This document shows, one piece after another, positions 13,068 through 49,719 of a stretch of 64,000 nucleotides of DNA. The stretch spans positions 5,952,001 through 6,016,000 of the forward strand of contig CP075497.1 in the NCBI GenBank assembly GCA_021613535.1, given 5' to 3'. Under the pieces are notes generated by a model, which did no database searches, had not been told where the DNA came from, and worked only from the letters and a program-made list of their open reading frames with translations. This DNA comes from Adineta vaga. Taxonomy: Eukaryota > Animalia > Rotifera. Position 1 is the first letter of the stretch, and each line of letters begins with the position of its first letter. The translations under genes and the position numbers were made by a program.

Positions 13068-14596
13068 ATGATGACAGATAATGGATCAATATCGATGATA
13101 GTTCATTGGAAAAAACAGAGTAGATCGATTGACATCAAAACTACTGATAATATTAGTGCTATTGAAAAAGTAATTGTAGAAGCCTTCGAATTAAATCAAA
13201 ATACAAGTCTTTCAAAATATCAAATTCAATTCTATGATAGTAATTATCAAACATATATGGATCTCTATCCTAAAATATTACCTTCATTTCAAGCAATTCT
13301 ATGTAAACTTTTATCACAAGATGCACCAGCTCGATCAGATAAAGCTTGGTCTCTACGAATTGTTTCTAAAATCGATCAAGCTATAGGTAAGTAGCATCAT
13401 TTTAATACTTTTCTTAGTTGTCTTTCTACATGTATAGATCAATCATTCCATGGATCGATTACTGATGATACATATACATATCAACAAGTAAATGATTCAA
13501 CACAAATACCTGCAAATGAAGAATTATCACTTTCAATTTGTAATTCAACAAATGATCTTCCATCTGTTCGTTCATTGAGTGAAACAAGTAAACTTTGTTT
13601 TCTTCATTTTTCTCATAAATAGTTTTAGACGTTATTACTTAGTATCTAGCATTCCACACAATTTATCTAGAAATAGGGAAGAAAACACATCTGAACATCC
13701 ATATCGATTTCGTTTTCAATCTCATCTTGGAGATGACCAACGAAAACAATACGAAAGTGAAATGATTCGTACAGATTCTTCGAAGTAAGTTATTTATTTG
13801 TTTCTCTACTTCAAATTATCGATTCACATCTATTTTAGTAATAAAACATCACTTGCCGGTGTTCTTCTATGTACAAAAACAAATTCGCATCCAATTCTTC
13901 TTGTAATAAATTCTGATTATGATACAAGAATTCAATAGTTTAATAATCTTTTTAGTTTCACATTCCAGCTGAAGAAATTAATCTTGCTTGGTCCATTGAT
14001 ATTTATATATTGACTGAAGCGGATGATAATGGTACTCATTATTTACATGCATCAAAAGGTATTTTTCGGCATGATCCAAAATCTTCAGAGGATGCTAGTT
14101 GCAGTCAAACGGGTAAAATAGTAAATCCACATAATATTAAATTAAATTCCAATGATCTTCGAGATGGCAAATATGAGTAAATAAGTTTCATTTTTCTGAA
14201 TATAATCGATAATTTTTATTTTCGATCGGAAAATTAGGATGCATATCAAAGTATGCAATATTAGAGGTCAAAATACATTACGAAAAGAAATATTAAAAGA
14301 ATTTCCTGGATCAAAAAAGACGAATACTGTCTCACAAAGAACGACGAATAATTTACGATTTGATAGTGAGAAATATCATGTTGGATGTGTTCTTGTTCAG
14401 GAAGAAAAACCATGTGACCACTGTATATCTAGTTCAACGTTGCTAGTAAGTGAAATATTTGGAATAAATCAATATGTGTAATTAGGAATCCTTTTTTTTT
14501 CTAGTTCGAAAACGAAATGATACTGATAGATCAAGAGAAGAAGAAGACAAAAATCATGGAAATTCAGAAGGCAAAAAAATACGAAAATGTGTCTAA
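13068..14596 (+). CDS. Uncharacterised protein: N-terminal ubiquitin-like/PB1-like module plus C-terminal divergent Rel-homology-like domain (last exon frame uncertain; stop at 14596 or about 14657)
   Basis: Spliceable multi-exon ORF with GT-AG introns. The N-terminus ISMIVHWKKQSRSIDI...YQIQFYD...YMDL has a beta-grasp pattern. The C-terminus FRFQSHLGDDQRKQYESE...WSIDIYILT...HYLH...NPHNIKL...KYHVGCVL...ISSSTL aligns by eye with the C-terminus of the gene at 37519. Confidence 0.6.
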
Positions 14597-32100: not shown

Positions 32101-35100
32101 CACTGATTTGATTCAAACTAAGATAATTTTACCACATTCTTTTTCTTTTCTATTTGCTTTTGAGATATCTATTTGCCTTTAGTCTATCATATACTCATAA
32201 AAAAAGTATCAAGTTCGTGTGCTGCCTCTTCTCTGTTGTTGTTTTTCATCAAATTTTATTTCGCATTCTCCGTAAGTTTGATACTCTGCTGTAAATACTC
32301 CTATCAACAATATAATTTTGTTTTCCGCTAAAAAAATCGATGTGTAATGGTTCTATATGATCGTTTTCTTTTTCTCATTCTCTTATCGGATTTTATTGCG
32401 ACTAATCATAAATAATACCGCAAGAGAATGCGCATTGCTGCTGCTACTATTATTTTTCTTTTTTATTTATCATGATTGACGTTTGACGAATCTATTTACT
32501 GTTGTATTGTTGGTATTACTTTATTCTTTCGACGATTAAAAATATAAAATATGATTATTGGCTTTTAATATAATTTAATCGAATAATTTATCTTACCATG
32601 ATTCGTGAGTACCGCTTATCTTTAACTCGAAAAAGAAAACATAAATTGCTGGTTATTCATCATCATCTTCTTCTTCTTCTTCATTGTCATTCGTTCGTCG
32701 ACATTTATTTCGCATTCTTTTCATTTTTCTTGTTGCATTTCTGTAGGTCCTACCTTATATCATTCATCTAAACTAAACAAAGCAACAGACGAAAATTCTC
32801 ACTTTACATCAACAACTTTCTCTCGCGCTATCACTGCCACAAGTGATAAAGAGAAGACACTAGTTTCTCTACAGAAACCAACAACAATAAGTGAAGATAA
32901 AAGAGAAAATCGCGCGTTTATCACTAAAGTTTACGAAAGTGAAGAAGAAGACAACGACGACGACGACAATACTGAAGCCGATACATATCTAACTTCACTA
33001 AAATCAATTGAAGATTCACCATATCATTTTCCAGTTACAAACATGTCACATACAGCTCCAAATCTACGAATGAATCATGATCAATACCCTGAAGATCAGA
33101 TGGAACAGGGTATACAAACTAATTCTGGTACATATAACGATCACAGAACGAATGCTGATGAATTGGGTGATATTGATGGTAATTATCAGCCAAATTCAAT
33201 AACAAGACAAGGTAGAGCTTTAACATCAACAAATCGTCAATATGATAAACGTCGACGACTATCGGATACTCATCCAATGAATGATGTTAGTAATCGAGGA
33301 CAATCATTTGGCAATGACGAATTTCAAGAAAATAAAAAAGAAAGATCTCTTACACCAAAAAAATATCGGCTTCTGAAAAAACGTCTTGACCAACTACGTC
33401 GACAAGAAGAGCAAGCATATGAACAGGATGAACGAGAAAATCGTCCTTCACATCTTGCTAATGGTCATCGGCAAGAATCACAATATCCATCATCGCCACA
33501 AAGACCATATCACCAGTCGAACTTAACATCAACATCGAAACAACATGAATCATCAAATTCTCGCGATCAGAATGATCAAAAGTTTCCGTCAAAAGAGCGC
33601 GATGATGTTCATCAGGCTGGCCCATCAAAGAATCAGACTACATATAGCGCATCAAACTCATCCCCACCAGGAACGCCACCACAGAAAATATATGAACGAA
33701 CAGATCGTCATGATGAACAACGTACTGGTCAATCGGCAACGCATAATCAATATCGTTCTGAAAAGGACATAACATCAACAGGAGCGCAAAATCAATCATC
33801 ACAGTTACCAACACAATCATCAGATTCGTCAAGACGATCACAACAAACTCCTAATCAATATCAGATCAAATCAGGTACTCTAGAAATAAGAGAAAGTCCA
33901 TCTAGCAATAGTTTATATGCTCGTGATCCTAACAATACAGAAATGGAAATGATTTTCAAAACTAAATTTCAAGGTGCTGATGATCATGAACGAGTAAAAC
34001 AATTCATACAAACAACAATAGGCAATCAAAGCGATAATCTTCCGCCAGCCAATATCAAAGAACAACAACATACTAACCGCTATCCACCTATTAACGATAA
34101 TAAAGATAATGATAAATTAACAACATCGGATAGATTTACACCATCAGGTGGAACTGGAGTTCATTCAAATAAGTATGATCAAGAAGGAGATCCTTCATCA
34201 GACCATTCTCCTTCTAGACCATCTCAAGCTCACGGACGTCAACCAACACAGACGATATTAACGCCTGATTCATCTGTACTAGTTACACCTCACCAATCGT
34301 TAACACAACCGCGAAACAAAAAACTATACTTTTTCGGTTCTAATGATCAGAATAAAGGTTCTTATTACGACAGTGATGATGATGAAGGTGCTTGTTTAAC
34401 ATTTGGTCATGGTACGCAGACAACATCTCCTACAGATAATAGTAGCAAATTATATCATGGCACATCTCGAAACGCTGATTTGATACCAGAACGAGACGCC
34501 GCAACAAATACTAGTGTTTCACTAGCACCATATGCAACAAAAGATCGAGAAAATCGCATGCAACAACAAAAATCTGGTCGACCCTACGGATCACCAACTG
34601 ATGAAAATGATTATGCATATGTATCCGACGTAAACACTTCGACTAGTTTGAATCAAAGTATTCCACGAAATACGAGTGGAAATCAAGTTTCTAATCAGAA
34701 AGGTTTTCCTCGTGGATATGACGATGATGATGATGAAGTGGGCAATAACGGTAATATGTACGGAAATGCATATGGTAATGACAATCCCCGTCAACCTTCA
34801 CATCGTTCGGATGAAGTGAAAGGTTCTGGAAACAACGACCAACGTAATCGTAGAACAAATCCAGCTCAACCCATCCATACAGACAGATACCGTACAAATA
34901 GCGATATGAGCGAAAGTGGTCATCAAGTATAAAACAAAAGAAAATAACTGATTGAAATAAGAACATATCGTGTTTAAAAGATAAACCATCATAATGTTCG
35001 ATTGTATTCGAAATAGATTAATCATGTCTGTTTTTTTTCAAAGTTCATTTACAATTGATTTTATTTAAGAAATTTCCATTCTCTTTTAGTTTCTCTAGAT

Positions 35101-37004
35101 TCTTTCTCTATCGTATTTTAATTCGTTTTTTTTCATTTACGTTATGGATAAATTGTTTTTTTGTGTCTGGTGTTTTATTGAAAGTAAAGAGTTATAACAA
35201 ATGAATATAAAATGTAAAGAAGGTCGTTACTTGTTGTGAAAAATGTCAATAGAAAAGAGAGAGACACATCAGACTTGATAAAACATTGGAATGTATATAC
35301 GTAGGTGTATGGTATGTTTGGATAGAAAGTATTCTTATCTCTTTAAAATAAAAAAAAGATATATACATACATACATATATACTTGTAAACTACTTTTGCT
35401 TTTTTTCGTATTTATTTACAGGTAAAAAACCGCTTGAGATAACTGTTCGGACTACTGCGGGACCATATTTGTATACATCTGGCATTATACCACCAAGACC
35501 ACATTCATCACCAACAACTGATAAAACTGATGACATAATCGAAAAAGAATCATTTGTGAAACAACAAACTCTTTTTCACACACCAGATTCATATTTCTAT
35601 AATTCGCGTGATAATAACGAAGAACAACAAGAAAAAAACGTTGCTGCAATGCATAGCGTACGAAAACACAATCAATCTGCGAAAGAGTCAGCAACAAAAC
35701 CAGTTCGAGATCATGGTACACAATCAGAAGTAACCAAACGTACTATCGGAACAATGTGTGGTCCAGTTGCAATACGTCATTTCAATAATGAAACAGAATC
35801 ACAACCACCACCACCACCAACAACAACACAGATTTCAAGCTCACGCCATCAGCAGCAATCACCACAAAGATCATTACATGACATAGAACGAGATTATCAA
35901 AGACATGAAACGCAATATCGACCCCAAACACCGAGACGTAACACTAGGGCCGATGATAAGCATGATGAAGAACAACTATCACCATCTTTTGAACGTCAAC
36001 GTCCACCATCTAGATACGACACGAATACTAATACTCGATTGCCTCCAGCAGCTAATCAATCTGAGGATTTAACATCGAATCGACATCCCCAACCAAGTTC
36101 AACATCAAAAGATGATCAATGCGGTCCTGCTCAATCATACGACAATCATTCGCCTTCTTCGTTCTCAACATCAAATAATTATTCATCGAAAAAAAAACAT
36201 CAACCAGCCAAAACTTCAGTTGAAACAGATACTAGGTACGATGGTATGAAACCTCAAAGAGATCAAGGTGTTCAATCAGAAACACGTTCAGTAAGACATA
36301 ATGGGACATCAACAAATACAGAAGAAAAACCTCGACACCCAGATCCATTGAACAGACCAACCCGTCCAGTGGTAGTGAAACCTCAAGATGGTTGTATTCT
36401 GTTGACATGTGATCCACCACGACCGAAACCGGGAGTTATTCCTCTTCATCCTGAGAAAAATGATGGTTATGTTGGCAACTACGATCCAGTTGACAACGGA
36501 AATGGTTCAAATAATCAATCAAATACGTCGACAATATATGGCGATAAAATTTATATCGATCAAAAACCAAAGCCGACTATAGTTCCACTTAGTTATGGTC
36601 ATCAGCATAAGACACCACCGATGCGAGAATCACCTACATTAAATATTGGCACTGAAAATTTTATTCGAGAATCACCCGATAATGAATTTACAACTCCACT
36701 GGAAAGAGATTACATTGAAGATCCTAATCGATCATTTCATATAGATAATCGAAATGATCCGACATCCCACAAGAAACGTGTCGTCTTATTACGTGTTCTT
36801 AATTCAGCGCAAACATATGTTTTCGAACAACAACCATCATCAAACAAAAATGTTCATCAATCACGAACAAATAAAAATTTCTTATTAGCATCATCACCAA
36901 CAATGCAATCATTTAATTCACCAGCTCGAATTCACGATTCTCGTACAAATCAAACAAGTTCAAATGATTTTACTGGCCGACATTTAGCTTCCCAAAATGC
37001 CTAA
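29129..37004 (+). CDS. Ankyrin-repeat + discoidin (F5/8-like) + possible SAM-like protein with long disordered C-terminal exon(s); start uncertain
   Basis: Ankyrin motifs (TPLIIAAGKG, TALNLAV, GKTALHRAA, TTPLHIA, GETPLSIA). Discoidin-like NLLD...YW...WIIFDL...TRFLRVFILDNYGG. The phase-1 donor at 32062 joins in frame to exon 32747-34932 or to exon 35422-37004. Confidence 0.75.
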
Positions 37005-37518
37005 TTTTCTTTTTGATTTATTTTCATTTTTTTTATAACGCTTTAAAATTCTTTTACTGAATGATTTTTGTATTAAAAAAAATATTCACGAACAATAAAT
37101 ATTCTATTTGACTATTTCTAATAAATTCATTTCTTTTTTTCAAACGTACTGATGGTTGATGACATTGTTCAAGGTATCGTATGAAAGAAACCAAACATAA
37201 TGGATATCACTAGTTCAAAAAATTGAAACTATTCAATGTTATTACATCATCGTTATGAAATGGAAGAACGATCCTACATCATATTACTATTGCATTAAAA
37301 GATATTCAGTAAATATGTGGAAAACAATTGCTATTAAAAAATATAAATAATGTCTTTTTTCTCGCTTGTTTACGTCGATGTCTTTTTTCCTCTTATATTT
37401 TTCGCCTGCGAATGACGCCATGAGCAGAACGCAAAGCTGGTTTTCATTATAGACGAAGAAAAAAGATAGAGATCGGCAAGACAAACTTTTGTTACTTTCT
37501 TTTCTATTCTAAACAACT

Positions 37519-40500
37519 ATGATGAAGGCTGCACCCGCAATTACAAATGGACTTCAAAGGGTACAAACTGATCAGAATAATTCATCTTTATGTCCAATTG
37601 AGGAAACTGATGCTTTGTTCGATATAGATTGTCAGGAACTATTAAATCCTGAAGAAAAAGGTAAAAATTAATAAACATTATTCTTTTATCAAATACGTTT
37701 CTTTGTTGTATATATTTAGAGGAATTTCAAAATTTTTTGTTATATACCGATCAAATGAAAGAGAACCCATTTGGTAAGAATACAACACATCTATTCTAGA
37801 TCTAATTTAGAAAAGTAGATGAAACGACTATTCCATCGCTCACTTTTTCTGTTGTGTTTTCATCTCGAAAACAACCTTCATTCATTTCCTAAACCAAGAG
37901 ATGTCATACTGTCCATTGTTTTTTCACCAAAACGAGTAATATAAATAAAAAAAACAAAGCTTTGACAACAAAGGTAAAGAAACTTAGGACAATATTTTTA
38001 TTTACTAATCAAATATAATCAACACGTGTAGTCGATTTTAACACACGTGAAAAGTTCGTTTAAAACATGAATCTGTTCTACTAATTGAATTTTTGTTCAG
38101 TATATAGTCTTTCGAAATTGTTCATATCGTTCACTTTTTATTTATCTATTATTTAATAAATTCAATTCATTTCTTAGAATGGCGACAATTGTTCGATACG
38201 GCGACCAATACATTTAGATCGAAATATGAATTTCGTCTATGTGAAGTAAATAATGATAATCTATCTTTATATTCATCTGTTCTCTGTGGATTGGATCGTG
38301 TGGATGAAATTGTTCCTAAACGTTTATGTAGAAAGGTTATTGGTCATATTATTGAATCATCTGAATCCAGAGTCTCTTATCGTTCACACGAAATCGATGG
38401 AGAATATTGTACAAATATCGAAGAAGATCTCGAAGTAGTTGGTGAACCTGAACTTCATGCTTTAGCATCGCTGTATCCAAAATATTTATTCTGTGTTATT
38501 TCGGCAATTTGCAATGGTAATGAGATCGTTTCTACAATAATTTACAAATATGTTAAAGATATCAAAGCATATGACAAATGCATTTTTGTATTATACGATG
38601 GTGGAACTCGTCAATATCAACCTTTATATTTATATAACAAAATAGATGGTGAAGAAGAAAAAACCAGTTTAAATATCATGATACAGATGAGAGAACTTCT
38701 TTGTGAATTTATTGAAGAAAATTTACATTGTAAGTAAATTCTTGAATTATAGCAGACAATAAAAGTGAATTATCTTTTAATCTGTGTGCAGATTATGGTG
38801 CCGTGAAATTCGAAGAGGTAGAAACGTCCGATGAAAATTGTATATTGATTGAAAACGAAAGTAAGCAAAATGTTATATTTCATACATGTTTTGTTCAATA
38901 ATTTTCTTTTTCTCGTAATTTCCAGATGATGGTAGTGATAGATGTAAATCCATCAAAAACAATAATCTCTTAGAATCAGGTATTGATCCATTATAAATTA
39001 CATTCTTGAATTTGTCTTTTTTTTTCTTCAAATTCTTCATAAAATAGAAATAAACGATGATGATTCAATGGATCTCTACACCGGTGGCACAAAAATCTCA
39101 GCATCAACTATGAATAAAGGTTTGTTAGAAAGGTTTTGTATTTAGATTCAATATGAGTACAGTCATCTTTCGTGTACAATCCATTCTAAATTAGAGCTAA
39201 TCGAATAGTATCAGTTCGTTTGAACAAGAGATCTTAGTTTCGTCTAGTTAATGAAAAATGAAGTAGTTGATCGATAGGAAAGCTCGAACATACCTACAAG
39301 TCATTTTAATGTGTTTTTTTCGTTCTAACAGGTGCCAATATATCATTGAAAATCAAGCAACGTAATTTTGAACAAGCATATGAATTTGTTAAAAAATCTG
39401 TTCTTGGTGATGGTCACTGTTTATTTTCATCATTGATCAATGTACTACATCCTTTAAAAGCTACAACTTACGAAAGTTTGAGAAAAGAGGCTGCAGATTT
39501 TATCCGTCAATCAGATCAAATTGACGATAATGTGTTGCACAGTGAAACTGGGCTTACTCGTGAGGCTTATTGTTACAAAATCGAACACACGAATACGTAC
39601 GGTGGTGAATTAGAATTATGGGCTATCGGCAAACTATATAAGACAATAATTCGTGTAGTCAGTGTGGTAAAAGGGAATCATGAAGTACCATCTGTGTCTA
39701 TCACAGAATTTCCGAAGGATGAGCCGTTATTTGAAAATACGGTTTACATTCTATATGGTGAAGAACAAAAGCATTATGAATCGTTACATTTAACGGATGT
39801 TACATATCAGCGTGAAAATTGGACCGCGTTTCACCGTGATGATGAGACAGTACCATATCTTCTTTTGGAATTTATTCGAGACAAACTTTATTGTAAGCAA
39901 ACATAACTTTTCATTGTACATAAATAACCTCTTGTCTCAAAAGATCCCGAGATATACAATCCATTATTACGAAAGTGGGACAGCAGCAAGATTTGATGGC
40001 TCATATACAATGTAAATACATGTTTATATAATTTCTTTTTCTACAATTTTTCTTATTCAAAATAGCTGTAAACGGTACTACCAATGTTTCCAATTTGCCA
40101 GTGATAAATTCTACAAGTGATTTATCAAGAAAACGAAAATTATCAAGTGAAATCGTTTCATTTCATAAGTTTGTAATTCTTCCTTATATTTATATAGAAG
40201 ATGAACAAAGTCCATTTCCAAATGCTATTGGAAAAAAATTATCATCATCAGAACTGATCACCAATAAAGGTTTGTCATATAGATTTCTGTTAGAAATAAA
40301 AGACTTGAAGTCAAAGTAGAGGAATAGCTACAATACAATTAATTTTACCTTTACATTCTAATCGTCCATGTCTAATGTCAATAAAGAATACATTTATTTA
40401 GGAGACAATGTATTACCTTCGACATCTCATCGTTCAATTCCTGCAAATGATCGAATTTCACCACTTCGTATGTTCAAAACGATTCATTTTAAGTTTTGTT

Positions 40501-41621
40501 TATTCATAGAATGTTGCGTATTTTTCTAGATAATGACAAAGAGTCATCAAACAACGTTGACAACTTCCTTCGAATAGATGCCACACCCTTTCCGCAGCGT
40601 ATGTAGAATTTTGAAAAAGAATTACCTGAATTAACGTTTGAAAAAATTCTAGCTACCTATGATATCGGTACAAAACAAAAACAAAGCAAGAACTTTCCAA
40701 ATGCTTCACTTTCAAGTAAAACAACTCCGCATTATGAAGAAATTCAACCACAAATAAGATTTGAAATCGAACCAGTAGCAGAGTTTCGTGCACGATTGTT
40801 GAGTGATTATATTCCAAAGAGTGAGAAAAAGAAAAATGGAACAGAATCTAAAATAAGACCGCCAACTTATTTTTCTGACCAAAACAATAAGCATTGTCTC
40901 AACTTATTGGTTTGTTATTTCTATACGAAGAATGTAGTATACAATATTTCTTCTAGATTCCAAAAACAATCTTACCTAATGATCCTTCTTCTATTTGGAT
41001 AGAAGTCTGCATAGTGACACGAACAATCAATGGATGGATATATATTAATCCACTGTTTGCATTTTATAAACATGAAACTGATTCGAAATCGATTACTTCG
41101 AATCCGATTCTTATTAAACTAGAAAGCGATGCTGCTTACAAATTAAAGGAATATTCCGAAGAATTAGTAAACTTGCTGTATGTTTATTCATATAGAAAAT
41201 TTCATATGACATTAAAATCAATTTTAGTCTATATCTAGCTGTTATAATGCTTAAAAACGATGAAGTATTACAAAAGCAACCGATACAACAATTTAAATCA
41301 GTAGAATCGAGTATGTTAATATCTTCCGTTCGTCACGATCTTGTCTAATAATTATTTTAATGTCTTAGATGGTATTGTTAATACAACGAAATATGACACA
41401 TCGGATGCTTTAAAAAACGCTTTTCATATGAATGACCTTCGTTTTGCCATCACTCCATGGATTAAAAAAACTCGGGAAGATCCTCACTGTCAATGTCCAG
41501 AGCTTCAATATATTAGCCAAATTTCAAGACAGAATAAAAATGTAATTATAACTCTAATTGTGAATACAGAAAAATCAATTTCTTTTTAATTTAGTTCAAA
41601 GTATCAGAAAAACAAATTTAA
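37519..41621 (+). CDS. Multi-exon protein: acidic N-terminus, inactive OTU domain, intact OTU deubiquitinase domain, basic NLS, divergent Rel-homology-like domain
   Basis: OTU2 (39331-39896) has GDGHCLFSSL, YGGELELWAI and KHYESL. OTU1 (38178-38730) has NNDNLSLYSS, VGEPELHAL and RQYQPL. SRKRKLS lies at about 40125. The C-terminus reads IRFEIEPVAEFRARLLSD...IEVCIVT...MNDLRFAITPW...YISQIS. Confidence 0.75.
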
Positions 41622-42158
41622 AAAAACACGTGATCAAGTCTTGACATTTATCTACATTCTGAAATTTCAATGAATCATCAATGCAGGAATTCAAACAATT
41701 TCCAGATTCTTTCATGATATTGCCTATCTTTTAATAGTTTTATGTTTTTCTTGTTTTCTATTGCATTCTTTTCGGTTATAAAACAAGGCAATCTGTTTCT
41801 ATTTAACACTAAATACACATTCATAATATCATAAGAATAACTGATCATTTTTTTTATACAATACTCGACTTATTATCAACAGGAGATGTCGCTCAACATC
41901 TGAACATATGTATAGAAGAAAACAAGTTAATCAGAAATAAAATAACAAAGCAGACATAAAACGATTCATGCCTCGATCGATAGATGATGAAATTGTATTC
42001 AGAGATATACCTCTTCGTTTGTAAACGTGTACAAACTGATGTTTGTTTGTTTGTTCTAGACGAGAACGAATACATATTACGACATGTATTCGATATCATT
42101 CCTCCTTCTTTTTACGAATTATCGTTGCGTTCATTTTTCTTTTTATCATTAGATTCTA

Positions 42159-45100
42159 ATGTCAGCACCCTATTACCACTATCCATCATCCACAAATAAT
42201 TGTGGAAATCCTGATCGTGGAAGAAAACGTAAATAAATATCTATACATATATTTATTATTTGATTAAAACTTATAAACATCTTTATTTTAGCTCGGTATG
42301 ACACACGTAATAAAGATATTGGTCCATCATCATCTTACATAACACAGAATACACATAATTATTATCGTCGTCCATTATCACCCGTTTCAGTTGGAGATGT
42401 ATGTAATCGTGTTAATAAAGTTTCGTTCGAAACGAATTATAACACACACAACACTCGAATACGTAATCGTTCTGCAGAACCTCGTCATTTGGAGAAACCT
42501 CATGAACATCGTCCACCATCTGTAAATGCTGTTCGTTCTGTTGTACCTGAACGTTCTCAACATGATCAAATCCCTATTTGTTCTCGTCCTGATTCGGGTG
42601 GCACTAAAGGACAATGTATTACACTTTATACAAATCATTTTAAATGTAATCTACCTGAGAATCTCGCTATTGTAAGTATTAAAAATATCATCCATTTACC
42701 TTCTTTACTTCAATTTCTTGATAGAATCAATATACAGTCCATGTCAATGTATTCAAACGTGGAAAGTGGTGTAATGCAAATAAACGTCAACATAATCGCT
42801 TTGAAATTGTTCAAAGAATTCTTGAACGTGAAGCTGACAATCTACCATTCGTTTGGTAGGTAATCATTATTGAAGAATGCCCATATATCATTTATGCTTT
42901 TGATTTCTAAGGTTTGATGATGGTAATTTTCTTTATTCTCGAGAATTATTACTTAACAAAGCTAAAACATATGAAATAACAATTAAAAATCAACTTTATC
43001 AATTAGATATTAAAGATATGTCCGATCGAGTTACTATAGAAGATATGTGGCAATATGTTCGAAGTAAAACACCTTGTAAACGTCCACAAGATTTAATTCG
43101 TATGCTTGAAACATTACTTAAACAAACGGTTCGTTCACGAATGGTTTGTATTCGAAATCAATTCTTTGAAAAAAATCAAACATTATATGAGGGTGGTTCG
43201 TATTTATATATGATTTTGTTCTTCTTCGTTTTTAATTCTTATTGTTTCTTTTTTCGAAGGTCCCTTTCAAAATAGTGGTTTTGCATTAGCTCAAGGTTTT
43301 TATCAAGCTATGTTTGTTACTCAAGCAGGACCAACATTAACATTGGATACAAAATGTTCATGTTTTTATCGAAATATTGATATGCTTTATTTTCTTTCAA
43401 TTTATCTTGGAAGAGATATAACTGTGAAGGGAGGAATATTATCTAATGATGAAAAACGTGCATTGTTACGAACAAAATGTTTAGAAACAATTACAATTGA
43501 AACTCGACATACAGCAAATAAAATGGTTTATAATATTCGAGGTTTTGGTGATAGTTCTGATTGTCATCCAGTTACATTAGATGGACCAGATGGTGATTCA
43601 CGTAAAATGTCTGTCACACAATTTCTTGATGAAAAATATCATATTAAATTAAGATATCCACATTTACCAACATTTGAATGTGTAAATAAAGGTGCACAGA
43701 ATTCCTCATATATACCAATTGAATTATGTTTTGTGGAAGAATGGCAAATTGTTGATCGTTCATTAATGTCAACAGATCAAAATGCTGAAAAATCGAAACG
43801 ATCAATTTTATTACCTGAAGTTCGTTTTAATAAAACAATGAATATTGCGAATGAAAGAAATTTTAATAATGATTCTTATTTAAAACATTTACCATTGACT
43901 ATTGATACGAATGAAATGTTACAAGTAAAAGGACGTGTACTTGAACCACCAAATATTGTCTATCGAAATAATCGAATTGTCTCAGTAACAATCGGAAAAT
44001 GGTTGATGAAAGGAAATCTATTACAACAAACAACACGTGTTCAAAAAGTAGATAATGTTATGATGTTGATTGATAAATGAAATTTTTTTCTAGTGGGAAA
44101 TGATTTTAGTCAAAGATGGTAAACGAGAACCAGGACATATGGATATGCAAAAATTGGATGAATTTTGTAATATGTTACCTGAAGTAAGTGTATTGAATTG
44201 CTGATCAATTGAAATCAAATTTCTATATAGACAACACGTCGATATGGAATTCAAATGAATCCTAATTTCGAAACAAAAATCATATCTCATCATCAAATTC
44301 GTCAATGTATTTATGATCTACATGCAAGTGGTGCTGAATTTGGTTTATTTGTTTTAATTGGTGATTGTCCAGAATCCTATCAAACAATCAAACGTTGTGC
44401 ATTACAAGAATTTGGTATCATTACGCTCTGTAAGTATATCTTCTCTCCAATGACTTGACAAAAAAAATTGATCTTTCATTTCCTAGGTTGTGATTTGGGT
44501 TCTATTCGAAAACAGAACAATCCTGGAAAACTTGTAAGTTCTATCCTATCAAAATTCATTTATTATATTTAGAAATATTTAGAATGCTTATATTGAAAAT
44601 GTTGCTCAAAAAATAAACGCACGATTAGGTGGAATTAATTCGTCAGTTTCATTCAAGAAAATATTTGTTGATCAACCAAAATCCAATGGTGATGTATTTA
44701 TGTTTATTGGCGCCGATGTTTCACATGTCGTAGTTTCGGAACGTAAACCATCGATTGCTGCTGTTGTTGCTAGTGTATCACCAACATCAACACAATATAT
44801 TTGTCGTTCAAGTGAACAACGACCAGTTAAAGATAAGAAATATTCTTTAGAAGTTATCAAAGATTTTCAACCAATGACACGTGATCTTTTACATGTTTTT
44901 GTACAAACAAATAAACAATATCCAACAAAAATCGTCGTTTATCGTGATGGTGTCGATGAAGGACATTTTCAAAAATTATTAGATAATGAAGTTCAAGCAC
45001 TGAAAAATGCTTGTATAGAAGTTTATGGTAATCGTCCACTACCAAAAATTACCTTTGTTGTCATTAAAAAATCACATAATACACGTTTTTTTGCTCCAAA

Positions 45101-45584
45101 TGGTCAACGAATAACAAACATGGCTGCTGGAACAGTTATTGATACAACAATTGTACATCCACGTCAATTTGATTTTTATCTTAATTCACATGCTGGTGCA
45201 TTAGGTACAAATGTTTGTTCTTATTATCATGTTTTATATAACGAAATTGAATTTACAAGTGATGAATTACAACAACTCACATTTTGGGTAAAGACAAATA
45301 GATTTGAACTGAATAAAAGATTGATTTCTTCATTCGTTTAGCTTTGTCATACTGATGTGCGATGTACAAAAGCAGTGAAATGTCCTGCAGCAGCTCGTTA
45401 TGCTCATACAGTTGCTTATCATGCAAGATATTTCGAAAAAGAACCATATCAAACAACATCTCAACATCAAACAAATAATCGTGATCCTTCAGGACCAGGT
45501 GAAGATGATCTTACTCTCGAAGATATCAAAAGTAATTTAATTATGGTCAATAAAAATGTCAAGAACATGATGTGGTTTACTTAG
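42159..45584 (+). CDS. Divergent Argonaute (N, L1, PAZ, MID, PIWI) with complete DEDH tetrad
   Basis: LYTNHF (N domain), KLRYPHLP...YIPIELC (PAZ), GRVLEPP, KINARLGGIN, FIGADVSH, YSLEVI, VYRDGVDEG, LCHTDVRCT...ARYAH, and C-terminal MMWFT. The exon junctions I traced splice in frame. Confidence 0.95.
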
Positions 45585-47776: not shown

Positions 47777-49719
47777 TTAATGTTCAGTAGTCATCGAATG
47801 ATGACGATTGAGACTTTGATGAAGATTTGCTGAAAGATTATTTAAACTTTGACTTCGATCTTTTCCTATAGTTGAAGCTGGTGTTGTTGGACAAGTGCGA
47901 TAGTTTAATGGAGAATTACATATTTCATTGAAATCACTAAACAAATGTTCGACATCCATATCAGCAAAAATCGAAAGAGGAAAATCATGATCAATTTCAT
48001 TATCAATATCATCAGGATCATCTTCGTCAAGTGTATGAGTAAATGATAATCCTCCTGAATGTTGTCGAAGTGCACGTAAAATATCTTCAGTAAGATCACC
48101 ATGTAAATCCATATGAAATGCTGCATGTATCATTGCTTGACGTTCACCTAGATCATGTTCGAGCAAAAATGGTTCACCAATTGGAAATGCTGTTTCTATA
48201 TGTGGATGACGACGATTACGTACATGTTTAACTAGTTTATAGATTCCAAAAGGTGGTAAAACAGTTATGGCTGCAGTAACAGCACCAGCAACTATCACTG
48301 GTGATGCAACGACAACACCAGTAGCGATCATACCACGAATAGTTCGACGAAGCCAAGGTTTTTCTGGATAGAAATTATATGGACATCCGAACATACTAGA
48401 AAGCGAAATATTTTACAAAATTGGTTGAGATCAGTAATTGTTTTTCACCTGAATTTATTACTATGTTGACCAATAAATGGAATTTGTACATAACGTCGAC
48501 CACATAAATAACAAAATTCACATGCACATGATTGACAAGTCATATGAGGACAACCTAAACGAAATAGATGAAATAAAACATTGATGAAACAAAATGAAAT
48601 TAAATACCTCCAGCACGTTGAATAAGTGAAGAACATTTTGGACATTTTCGAGCATTCCATTGTTCTTCATTTTTTTGATTGATCCATTTTGATAGAAGTT
48701 TATCACCTTTAATAAATTGTTTGCATGTCATATTTTCATGCCAAGGTGCTGAACAACGAAAACACCAGACAAGTGAACATTCTGAACATTGAACTTGTTT
48801 CGGAATTTTTTTATTATTATTTTGTGTTTTAAATTTTTTTTCTTTTACAATGGGAATGGATTTGACTGTGTCCAACGAATAAAGATGACAACAACGTGGA
48901 CCTAAAGATAATCATTAGAAATCAAATCATTAGATCAAGAAACTATTTACATGTTTTAGCACGTGGATTTTGATTAGCAATTAAATATAATCTTAAATAT
49001 CGTTCATGTAATGGAGGATCATATCGAACAAAATTAACGATCGATTCTCTTGTAAGATACTTATTACATTCATTTGCTACACATGGAATTTTAATTCGTC
49101 CATCGTTGATTGTAGATGATATATGTGCACGCCAACAATTATTACAACACAGAAAATAACAACAGGGAGAAACTTGTAATACTGCTTGTTCTAAACAAAT
49201 AGGACAAGGAGAGCTGACATAATTTGGTGGTGTTGGAAACGATTGAGGATCTAGTGAATCGTCAATAATTGTTTCATCGCCATCATCATCATCATCATCT
49301 TCGTCGTCGTCGTCAACATCATCAAACGTTTTATTATCACCATCACTTAGAGTAACAGTCTTTTCCACATCTGTCAATAAGCCACAAGACTTATTATTAT
49401 CGTTAGGCAGACGTCCTTCATCGATAGGAGTTGTCGTAATCTCAATATTATTCGGTATTGTAGTTGTATTCGTTAATGATTGACGACGACGAAGTGATTG
49501 GGCAACGGAGCCTGTTTCAATACAATAGATCGTCAATGAAGTTGTCGATGATGCTACTGAGGATATTGTCGTTATCGATGATGACGGTGTGACTGTGGAG
49601 ACATCAAGTTTATTTGAAAGTGAATGATGAATAGGTGAATTAACATTCAAAGTATGCGATGGATTGATATCTTTCACGGACGGAATATCATTTGAGCTAG
49701 ATAGACACTGCTCAGCCAT
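47777..49719 (-). CDS. RBR (RING-IBR-RING) E3 ubiquitin ligase, RNF217/RNF144-like
   Basis: RING1 CPICLE...CC...CNNCW...IPCVANEC; IBR KTCPRC...VQCSECSLVWCFRCSAPWH; RING2 CPKC...AGGCPHMTC; hydrophobic segment after FGCPYNFYPEKP. Confidence 0.88.

Follow-up and report, generated by a model that had tools for sequence, protein, structure and literature searches.

Does a single gene of the bdelloid rotifer Adineta vaga join OTU-type deubiquitinase domains to a DNA-reading domain of the Rel family? The question was raised by a first-pass annotation of a 64,000-nucleotide stretch of the A. vaga genome (G000:C6:5952001-6016000, referred to here as the window, from whose first letter positions are counted); the genome comprises 100.8 Mb in six contigs, with a GC content of ~30%. 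The annotation had described two tandem OTU exons, an RKRK motif and a C-terminal domain with Rel-like motifs at 37519-41621, and its structural reading is supported by the analysis reported here; every sequence feature that it listed was recovered at the position given. Behind a dead-plus-live pair of OTU domains lies a Rel-family DNA-reading domain that has no dimerisation half, a combination found, in the searches made, in bdelloid rotifers only. A live OTU, a conserved dead OTU and a Rel-type DNA-reading domain stand together in one expressed chain. To our knowledge, the ligases and deubiquitinases that control NF-kB and NFAT in characterised systems are all separate proteins, and a literature search (bdelloid/OTU, rotifer Rel homology, Adineta NF-kB, Rel-OTU fusion) returned no description of an OTU-Rel fusion.

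One transcript and its two OTU domains

Splicing was traced with contigs from four public runs, belonging to two studies, that were aligned on 37300-41800. The label "RNA" on these runs is a guess, and the nature of the material was read from the splicing pattern of the contigs. Sixteen stretches of 51–404 nt are skipped, and the skipped ends are GT..AG in 12 of the 15 listed joints, with two more fitting if mismatches adjacent to the joint are allowed; thus, the contigs represent spliced RNA. They are 94–99% identical to the window and derive from another allele or strain. In run X1, a single 2,940-nt contig (37382-41800) spans OTU1, OTU2 and all of the C-terminal exons, as does a 2,551-nt contig of run X3, and contigs of run X2 bridge OTU2 to the exon at 40653. 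As one contig passes through the two OTU exons as well as those of the C-terminal part, all of these belong to one transcript.

The first-pass annotation had made its proposal depend on the OTU and C-terminal exons not being divided between separate genes, and the contigs join them. Two adjacent, separate genes are extremely improbable. Nothing positive speaks for such a division, in favour of which the window offers just its frame break after OTU2 (see below), and the contigs of X1, X3 and X2 that cross from one part to the other are accompanied by collinear fused proteins annotated in Adineta ricciae, Adineta steineri and Rotaria socialis. The proposal that a regulator and a putative DNA-binding module share one chain holds for the spliced contig, whereas the reading frame of the window itself is interrupted at 39944-40011.

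The gene lies on the + strand and consists of 17 exons (Table 1), beginning at ATG 37519 and ending with the stop codon at 41619-41621, both as first annotated. Frames and splice sites were first called by eye and script and then corrected with the contigs, which overturned a splice model lacking the exon 39944-40011 and the intron 40147-40197. This intron of 51 nt splits what had been regarded as a single exon carrying the putative nuclear localisation signal (NLS), and the exon set implied by the first-pass annotation is superseded accordingly. In the contig form, the exon lengths sum in frame to 868 codons (arithmetic on lengths alone), and the predicted product has ~850–870 residues. Exons were searched singly. 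Exon 1 encodes 47 residues, of which nine are Asp or Glu and three Lys or Arg. The linker encoded by exons 4–6 had no match in the family search. Eight contig letters lie between the pieces flanked by the two joints listed for exon 8; exon 13 extends to 40933 in the contigs, and the 3′ untranslated region (UTR) continues past 41800.

OTU2 matches the Pfam OTU family with 48.8 bits, compared to a cut-off of 23.3 (E 1.3e-12). The two catalytic sites that had been recognised earlier, the Cys in GDGHC and the His in KHY, are present and align with those of all the relatives. Its sequence matches in PDB are OTU1/OTUD2/vOTU, and OTUD5 is also among the nearest. From these comparisons, OTU2 is an intact OTU deubiquitinase domain and is predicted to be active. 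OTU1, by comparison, reaches 20.1 bits (E 1e-3), which is under the cut-off, and is 28% identical to OTU2 (BLASTP E 8e-12). Its sites read DNLSLYS and RQYQ, so that the substitutions proposed earlier, Cys to Ser and His to Gln, are borne out by the site alignment. The AlphaFold 2 (AF2) model of the OTU1 exon, built with 16 relatives in the alignment, has a predicted local distance difference test (pLDDT) score of 76.4. Its top 33 structural matches are all OTU, with a Z-score of 14.8 for OTUD2 (4boz_A) over 152 of 158 residues, 14.5 for yeast Otu1 and 7.7 for A20. The model indicates that OTU1 has a true OTU fold; without the catalytic Cys and His, it is a pseudo-enzyme.

Ser occupies the Cys site of OTU1 in every two-OTU relative examined, in both Adineta and Rotaria. 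In each of the two-OTU relatives, which come from A. ricciae, A. steineri, Rotaria socialis and Rotaria sp., the first copy carries Ser and the second has both Cys and His. Compared to A. ricciae, OTU1 is 51% and OTU2 45% identical. As OTU1 is conserved at least as well as OTU2, it is a maintained pseudo-enzyme and not debris. The OTU1 exon ends in CAT T/gtaagt and the OTU2 exon in TAT T/gtaagc, each exon opens and closes in phase 1, and the spliced contigs use the two donors that had first been noticed. These common phases and donors fit the exon duplication that had been proposed. The duplication is not recent: with 28% identity between the copies, and with both copies present in Rotaria as well as Adineta, it is an ancient event. 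A predicted complex of OTU1 with OTU2 scored 0.05, which bears neither way on contact between them.

The C-terminal domain and the Rel fold

The motifs IRFEIEP..FRAR..SD, IEVCIVT, MNDLRFAI and YISQI follow one another in the order first described. The four domain exons of the window cover positions 5–223 of the family hidden Markov model (HMM) gap-free, so that the window holds a complete domain. The fold was assessed on the A. ricciae orthologue P0003 (residues 625–870), for which the AF2 model has a pLDDT of 80.1 and a predicted template-modelling score (pTM) of 0.79. The top 39 Foldseek matches of this model are all Rel/NFAT (probability 1.00), and include NFAT1, p50, p52, c-Rel, RelA, TonEBP and Gambif1 (PDB 1a66 and 1nfa among the entries). 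VIA-align, a structural aligner independent of Foldseek, superposes the model onto residues 19–190 of p65 with a Z-score of 13.5 and a root-mean-square deviation (rmsd) of 3.0 over 161 residues. Further Rel structures score 13.1 (p65), 12.9 (p52), 12.6 (RelA-cRel), 12.1 (p50) and 11.6 (TonEBP), and the six Rel/NFAT5 representatives cover 155–169 residues of the model. The first-pass annotation had made its case rest on a Rel-type fold of this domain, and the orthologue is modelled as such a fold.

Several results weigh against this assignment or against the function proposed below. With single C-terminal exons, Pfam returned neither Rel nor any other domain (E≤10), and with six full-length relatives it returned no domain in the C-terminal region, PF00554 included (E≤1). 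Two exon profiles (A1 and A2) had no match among PDB sequences at E≤10. The folded sequence is that of the orthologue and not the window's own spliced protein; in alignment A3, which holds nine relatives with the window exons and the exons of two paralogues as separate rows, the four domain exons of the window are 51%, 58%, 52% and 35% identical to P0003. The loop FRARLLSDY stands at the place of RFRYxCEG, as judged by sequence order and aligned ranges, and in it the Tyr, Cys and Glu are replaced by Leu, Ser and Asp, and the Gly is not kept; every aligned member retains the two arginines, and nearly all retain the acidic residue. The window's domain is near neutral, with 28 Lys/Arg and 27 Asp/Glu, compared to the basic domains of its relatives (isoelectric point, pI, 8.8–9.4). 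Finally, the IPT/TIG dimerisation subdomain (PF16179) is absent, as the protein ends before it, and Pfam found no match to it in the six full-length relatives. A six-frame genome search with PF00554 also gave no match, but neither did its controls.

The likeness to Rel could also reflect a mere β-sandwich arrangement, reached by convergence or generic to Ig-like folds, in an unrelated lineage-specific domain. An identity of 10–17% between the P0003 domain and the Rel structures, without an HMM match to PF00554, would be in keeping with such an origin. However, the six Rel/NFAT5 structures score 11.6–13.5, compared to 7.2 for Velvet, 6.5 for RBPJ, 5.9 for CEP-1/p53, 5.7 for STAT and ~6 for ordinary Ig domains, and the N-domains of Velvet and RBPJ have themselves been described as Rel-like. 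The motif order agrees along the entire domain, and language-model features of the P0003 stretch independently choose RHD_DNA_bind clusters, with a score of 0.90 and 181 of 256 features in common. We therefore consider an unrelated domain very unlikely. Modelling thus supports the assignment of the C-terminal domain as a very diverged N-terminal Rel homology subdomain of NF-kB/NFAT (Rel-N), in a branch of the Rel family that sequence profiles miss.

The fold match is limited to this N-terminal, base-reading subdomain. Past the last strand of the subdomain, the protein continues for only 13 residues (5 in exon 16 and the 8 codons of exon 17), and so has no IPT or dimerisation half. Of the parallel with the Rel homology domain (RHD) drawn in the first-pass annotation, the N-terminal fold stands, in the orthologue model, and the dimerisation half does not. 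The gene would be evidence that a Rel domain is able to persist without that half.

Table 1. Exons and flanking transcribed parts of the OTU/Rel-like gene in the window
Feature	Position	Strand	Support
5′ UTR; two short upstream ATG frames (3 and 10 codons)	37382-37518	+	Contig start at 37382
Exon 1: start codon, acidic N-terminus	37519-37660	+	Joint 37660/37720 GT..AG
Exon 2	37720-37773	+	55 contig letters fall between 37658 and 38177; reading frame
Exon 3: OTU1, predicted pseudo-OTU, Ser at Cys site, Gln at His site	38178-38729	+	
Exons 4–6: acidic, low-complexity linker	38792-38860, 38926-38979, 39048-39119	+	GT..AG joints
Exon 7: OTU2, predicted intact OTU deubiquitinase domain, GDGHC, KHY	39332-39892	+	Pfam PF02338
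Exon 8: extra exon between OTU2 and the NLS exon	39944-40011	+	Joints 39892/39944, 40011/40066
Exon 9: RKRK motif at 40128-40139	40066-40146	+	Contigs, frames, motifs of relatives
Exons 10–12: linker	40198-40269, 40402-40467, 40530-40598	+	GT..AG joints
Exon 13: Rel-homology-N-like part 1, FRARLLSDY at 40784-40810	40653-40909	+	HMM 5-67, E 3.6e-22
Exon 14: Rel-like part 2, IPK..IEVCIVT..NPI	40957-41177	+	HMM 62-132, E 2.7e-24
Exon 15: Rel-like part 3	41228-41310	+	HMM 131-161, E 3.4e-6; contig joints
Exon 16: Rel-like last part, MNDLRFAIT, QYISQIS	41369-41541	+	HMM 165-223, E 5.6e-17; contig joints
Exon 17: last 8 codons and stop 41619-41621	41595-41621	+	Joint 41541/41595 GT..AG, four runs

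A bdelloid family and the condition of the window copy

An exhaustive search with OTU2 led to bdelloid proteins. One of these, P0003 (A. ricciae, 870 residues), is collinear with the window gene. The C-terminal domain was found by a local HMM in nine further proteins, and proteins with a Rel-N-like domain take at least four forms. A pseudo-OTU, an OTU and a Rel-N-like domain are combined in the window gene, P0003 and P0010; three OTUs precede the domain in P0005; a single pseudo-OTU does so in P0027, P0040 and a locus on contig C3; and the domain stands alone in P0175. The named matches are all bdelloid, the profile search found bdelloid or unnamed environmental proteins alone, and word-indexed protein searches with the C-terminus of P0003 gave A. 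ricciae proteins alone, or none. In the searches made, the family is found solely in bdelloid rotifers. As the layout is kept across Adineta and Rotaria, it is old and under selection. A functional label can now be offered for proteins whose C-terminal third is unannotated and whose only names are "unnamed protein product" and "Ubiquitin thioesterase OTU".

The bdelloid paralogues P0027, P0040, P0175 and the C3 locus (~9.965 Mb) carry a C-terminal domain of this family (HMM E 1e-55 to 1e-63), and share the exon breaks that flank the LNLL/IPK junction and the one before the last domain exon. P0027, P0040 and P0175 are without a catalytic OTU, whereas in the window gene and its orthologues an additional, intact OTU separates the dead OTU from the Rel-like domain. 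The C3 locus (G000:C3:9961000-9970999, minus strand, 7605-3617) comprises an upstream active OTU (SDGAC, IHY; 7605-6916), a pseudo-OTU (5518-4943) whose catalytic sites are occupied by Ser and Gln, and four Rel-N-like exons (4432-3617). Its pseudo-OTU and Rel-N-like exons are collinear with P0027 and P0040. Its interpretation as a simple ohnologue was rejected, since it follows these single pseudo-OTU proteins and has the active OTU upstream.

Two other relatives differ more in layout. The Rel-N-like-only paralogue P0175 (A. vaga hypothetical protein I4U23_026149, 362 residues) is encoded at 1284-2052 of G000:C5:13119320-13122469, and its loop, YRARYKSDY, is nearer to RFRYxCEG than that of the window gene. 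P0028 (A. steineri, 819 residues) has a partial OTU-like stretch, an active OTU, a middle part with Rel-like motifs and a C-terminal Ulp1/SUMO-protease domain (Pfam Peptidase_C48, E 6.7e-30); judging from these domains, it may be a ubiquitin-plus-SUMO double protease. Elsewhere in the window, the exon 13959-14177 loosely aligns with the IPK..IVT..NP segment. By these methods, the region 13068-14596, first annotated as a second RHD-like member, shows no kinship, with a tblastn E of 3 and no match to the family HMM at E≤1. On contig C6 near 9.46 Mb, the family HMM has a single weak match (E 0.0015), in a Rel-like array that is a distant branch at most.

The condition of the window's own copy adds further points against an intact fusion. 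Exon 8 has 68 nt in the window, whereas its contig version has 69 nt; if read through, the window's frame meets a TGA at 39994-39996, 17 codons past OTU2. The contig junction 40933/40999 would drop the IPK segment that every relative keeps, and the residue is changed in 22 of the 34 window-contig coding differences listed (a partial list), which suggests weak constraint or fast evolution. At the acceptor used by the contigs before 40999, the window has GG in place of AG. The junction 40909/40957 retains the IPK segment and was adopted in the gene model. In the tail of OTU1, one A is missing after 38657 and two bases are missing after 38680, relative to the contigs, a compensated pair of indels by which eight codons are rewritten. 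In run X1, a short contig 99% alike to the window has a depth of 3.3, compared to 15.3 for a contig 95% alike; this hints at unequal expression of two alleles, with the reservation that the depth of contigs is a poor measure.

These lesions raise the possibility that the window carries a decaying allele, which yields at most an OTU-only protein, and that the fusion is produced by the second allele or by different strains. The shortened exon with its TGA, the compensated indel pair, the GG at the contigs' acceptor and the low depth of the near-identical X1 contig would all be expected of such an allele. However, two in-frame routes are left to the window copy: exon 8 may be skipped (phase 1 to phase 1), or the AG at 39950-39951 may be used, which moves the splice 8 nt downstream and leaves an in-frame 60-nt exon. 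The Rel-like exons downstream are open throughout and match the family HMM with E 1e-17 to 1e-24, the one-base indel may be an assembly error, and contig depth is a weak gauge of expression. We regard decay of this allele as a real but minority possibility; it is compatible with either function of the Rel-like domain considered below, DNA binding or protein binding.

Predicted function and comparison with known systems

The layout of the intact chain is an acidic N-terminus, a dead OTU, a live OTU, an NLS-like motif and a Rel-N-like domain without IPT. The RKRK motif that had been placed after OTU2 is found there, and the relatives have NKRK, KKRK or KKRKR, with KRK conserved. This conserved K/R-K-R-K motif suggests nuclear import. 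By analogy with characterised proteins, a nuclear, DNA-tethered deubiquitinase is a plausible function. The protein would enter the nucleus, and its Rel-N-like domain would dock on DNA as a monomer, in the manner of the NFAT core domain. The Rel-N domain of the NFAT core binds DNA as a monomer, and therefore a module that consists of Rel-N only could in principle dock on DNA. The loop with both arginines (FRAR..SD, compared to RFRY.CE) would serve this docking. OTU2 would then strip ubiquitin from substrates on chromatin or deubiquitinate its own chain. Cys-to-Ser mutants of OTU enzymes are classical ubiquitin traps; OTU1 may therefore hold ubiquitin, uncut, much as such a "substrate trap" does.

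Taken as a whole, a 17-exon gene of a bdelloid family that encodes a dead and a live OTU with a Rel-N-like domain, and works in the nucleus as a deubiquitinase that is tethered to DNA or chromatin, is the most likely reading and somewhat better than an even prospect. Any single functional step must be given a far lower probability. That the base-reading half of NF-kB/NFAT has become a monomeric docking module, wired to a live OTU and to a dead OTU that holds ubiquitin, and that the result is a DNA-guided eraser of chromatin ubiquitin or a self-stabilising transcription factor, is a tentative proposal and remains doubtful. The gene would be a natural test case for locus-targeted deubiquitination.

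The Rel-N-like domain might instead bind proteins, such as the bdelloid Rel family or its inhibitors, and no DNA, so that the deubiquitinase is aimed at proteins of the Rel pathway. The replaced Tyr, Cys and Glu of the loop, the missing dimerisation domain and the lack of basic character in the window's domain are in line with protein binding, and the paralogues P0027, P0040 and P0175, with a dead OTU only or none, supply many potential partners. On the other hand, the loop arginines and the acidic residue that follows are conserved across nearly all aligned members, the NLS-like motif is conserved, the domains of the relatives have a pI of ~9, and the Rel-N core of NFAT, represented by 1a66 and 1nfa among the fold matches, is known to bind DNA alone. 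We consider a purely protein-binding domain unlikely.

Compared to the Rel-N domains of NF-kB/Rel and NFAT (PF00554; p65 19–190, NFATc1 core), the modelled orthologue shares the s-type Ig fold throughout the subdomain (Z 13.5), with the same order of conserved strands and, as judged by sequence order and aligned ranges, with two arginines and an acidic residue at the place of RFRYxCEG. As in Rel proteins, an NLS-like basic motif is present. However, the window's domain has no detectable sequence match to Rel, other residues stand for Tyr, Cys and Glu in the loop, and without IPT the classical dimerisation of Rel is impossible. The domain is also C-terminal, behind two OTUs, and the NLS precedes it instead of following it. 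A pathway regulator and a Rel domain likewise share one polypeptide in p100/p105 and in Drosophila Relish. There, the fused part is a C-terminal ankyrin inhibitor, whereas here it is an N-terminal deubiquitinase pair, and the window protein has no known processing site.

A20/TNFAIP3, OTULIN and Cezanne are likewise cysteine proteases of the OTU family that are tied to Rel signalling. They have no Rel domain of their own and work in trans, on signalling proteins further upstream. By fold, OTU1 is nearest to OTUD2/Otu1 (Z 14.8), and A20 is distant (Z 7.7). The pairing of a conserved inactive copy with an active one of the same fold is also seen in the MPN−/MPN+ pairs (Abraxas-BRCC36) and in the pseudo-OTU FAM105A. 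Here, the two copies are of OTU fold and lie in one chain, and the complex prediction leaves contact between them unsupported.

The surroundings of the gene include other reading frames. Directly downstream on the same strand, 42489-45341 (+) holds Argonaute/PIWI-like exons with PAZ/PIWI-like motifs recognised by eye. An open reading frame (ORF) at 48943-49719 (−), 7 kb from the deubiquitinase gene, has a Cys-rich RING/IBR-like stretch (CPICLE...C..C) and may, from this motif, encode an RBR-type ubiquitin ligase. Upstream, 33043-37004 (+) contains two long intron-free, low-complexity ORFs of 629 and 511 residues, rich in Ser, Gln, Pro and Asn, and the GC content of this region (0.33–0.36) is above that of the rest of the window.

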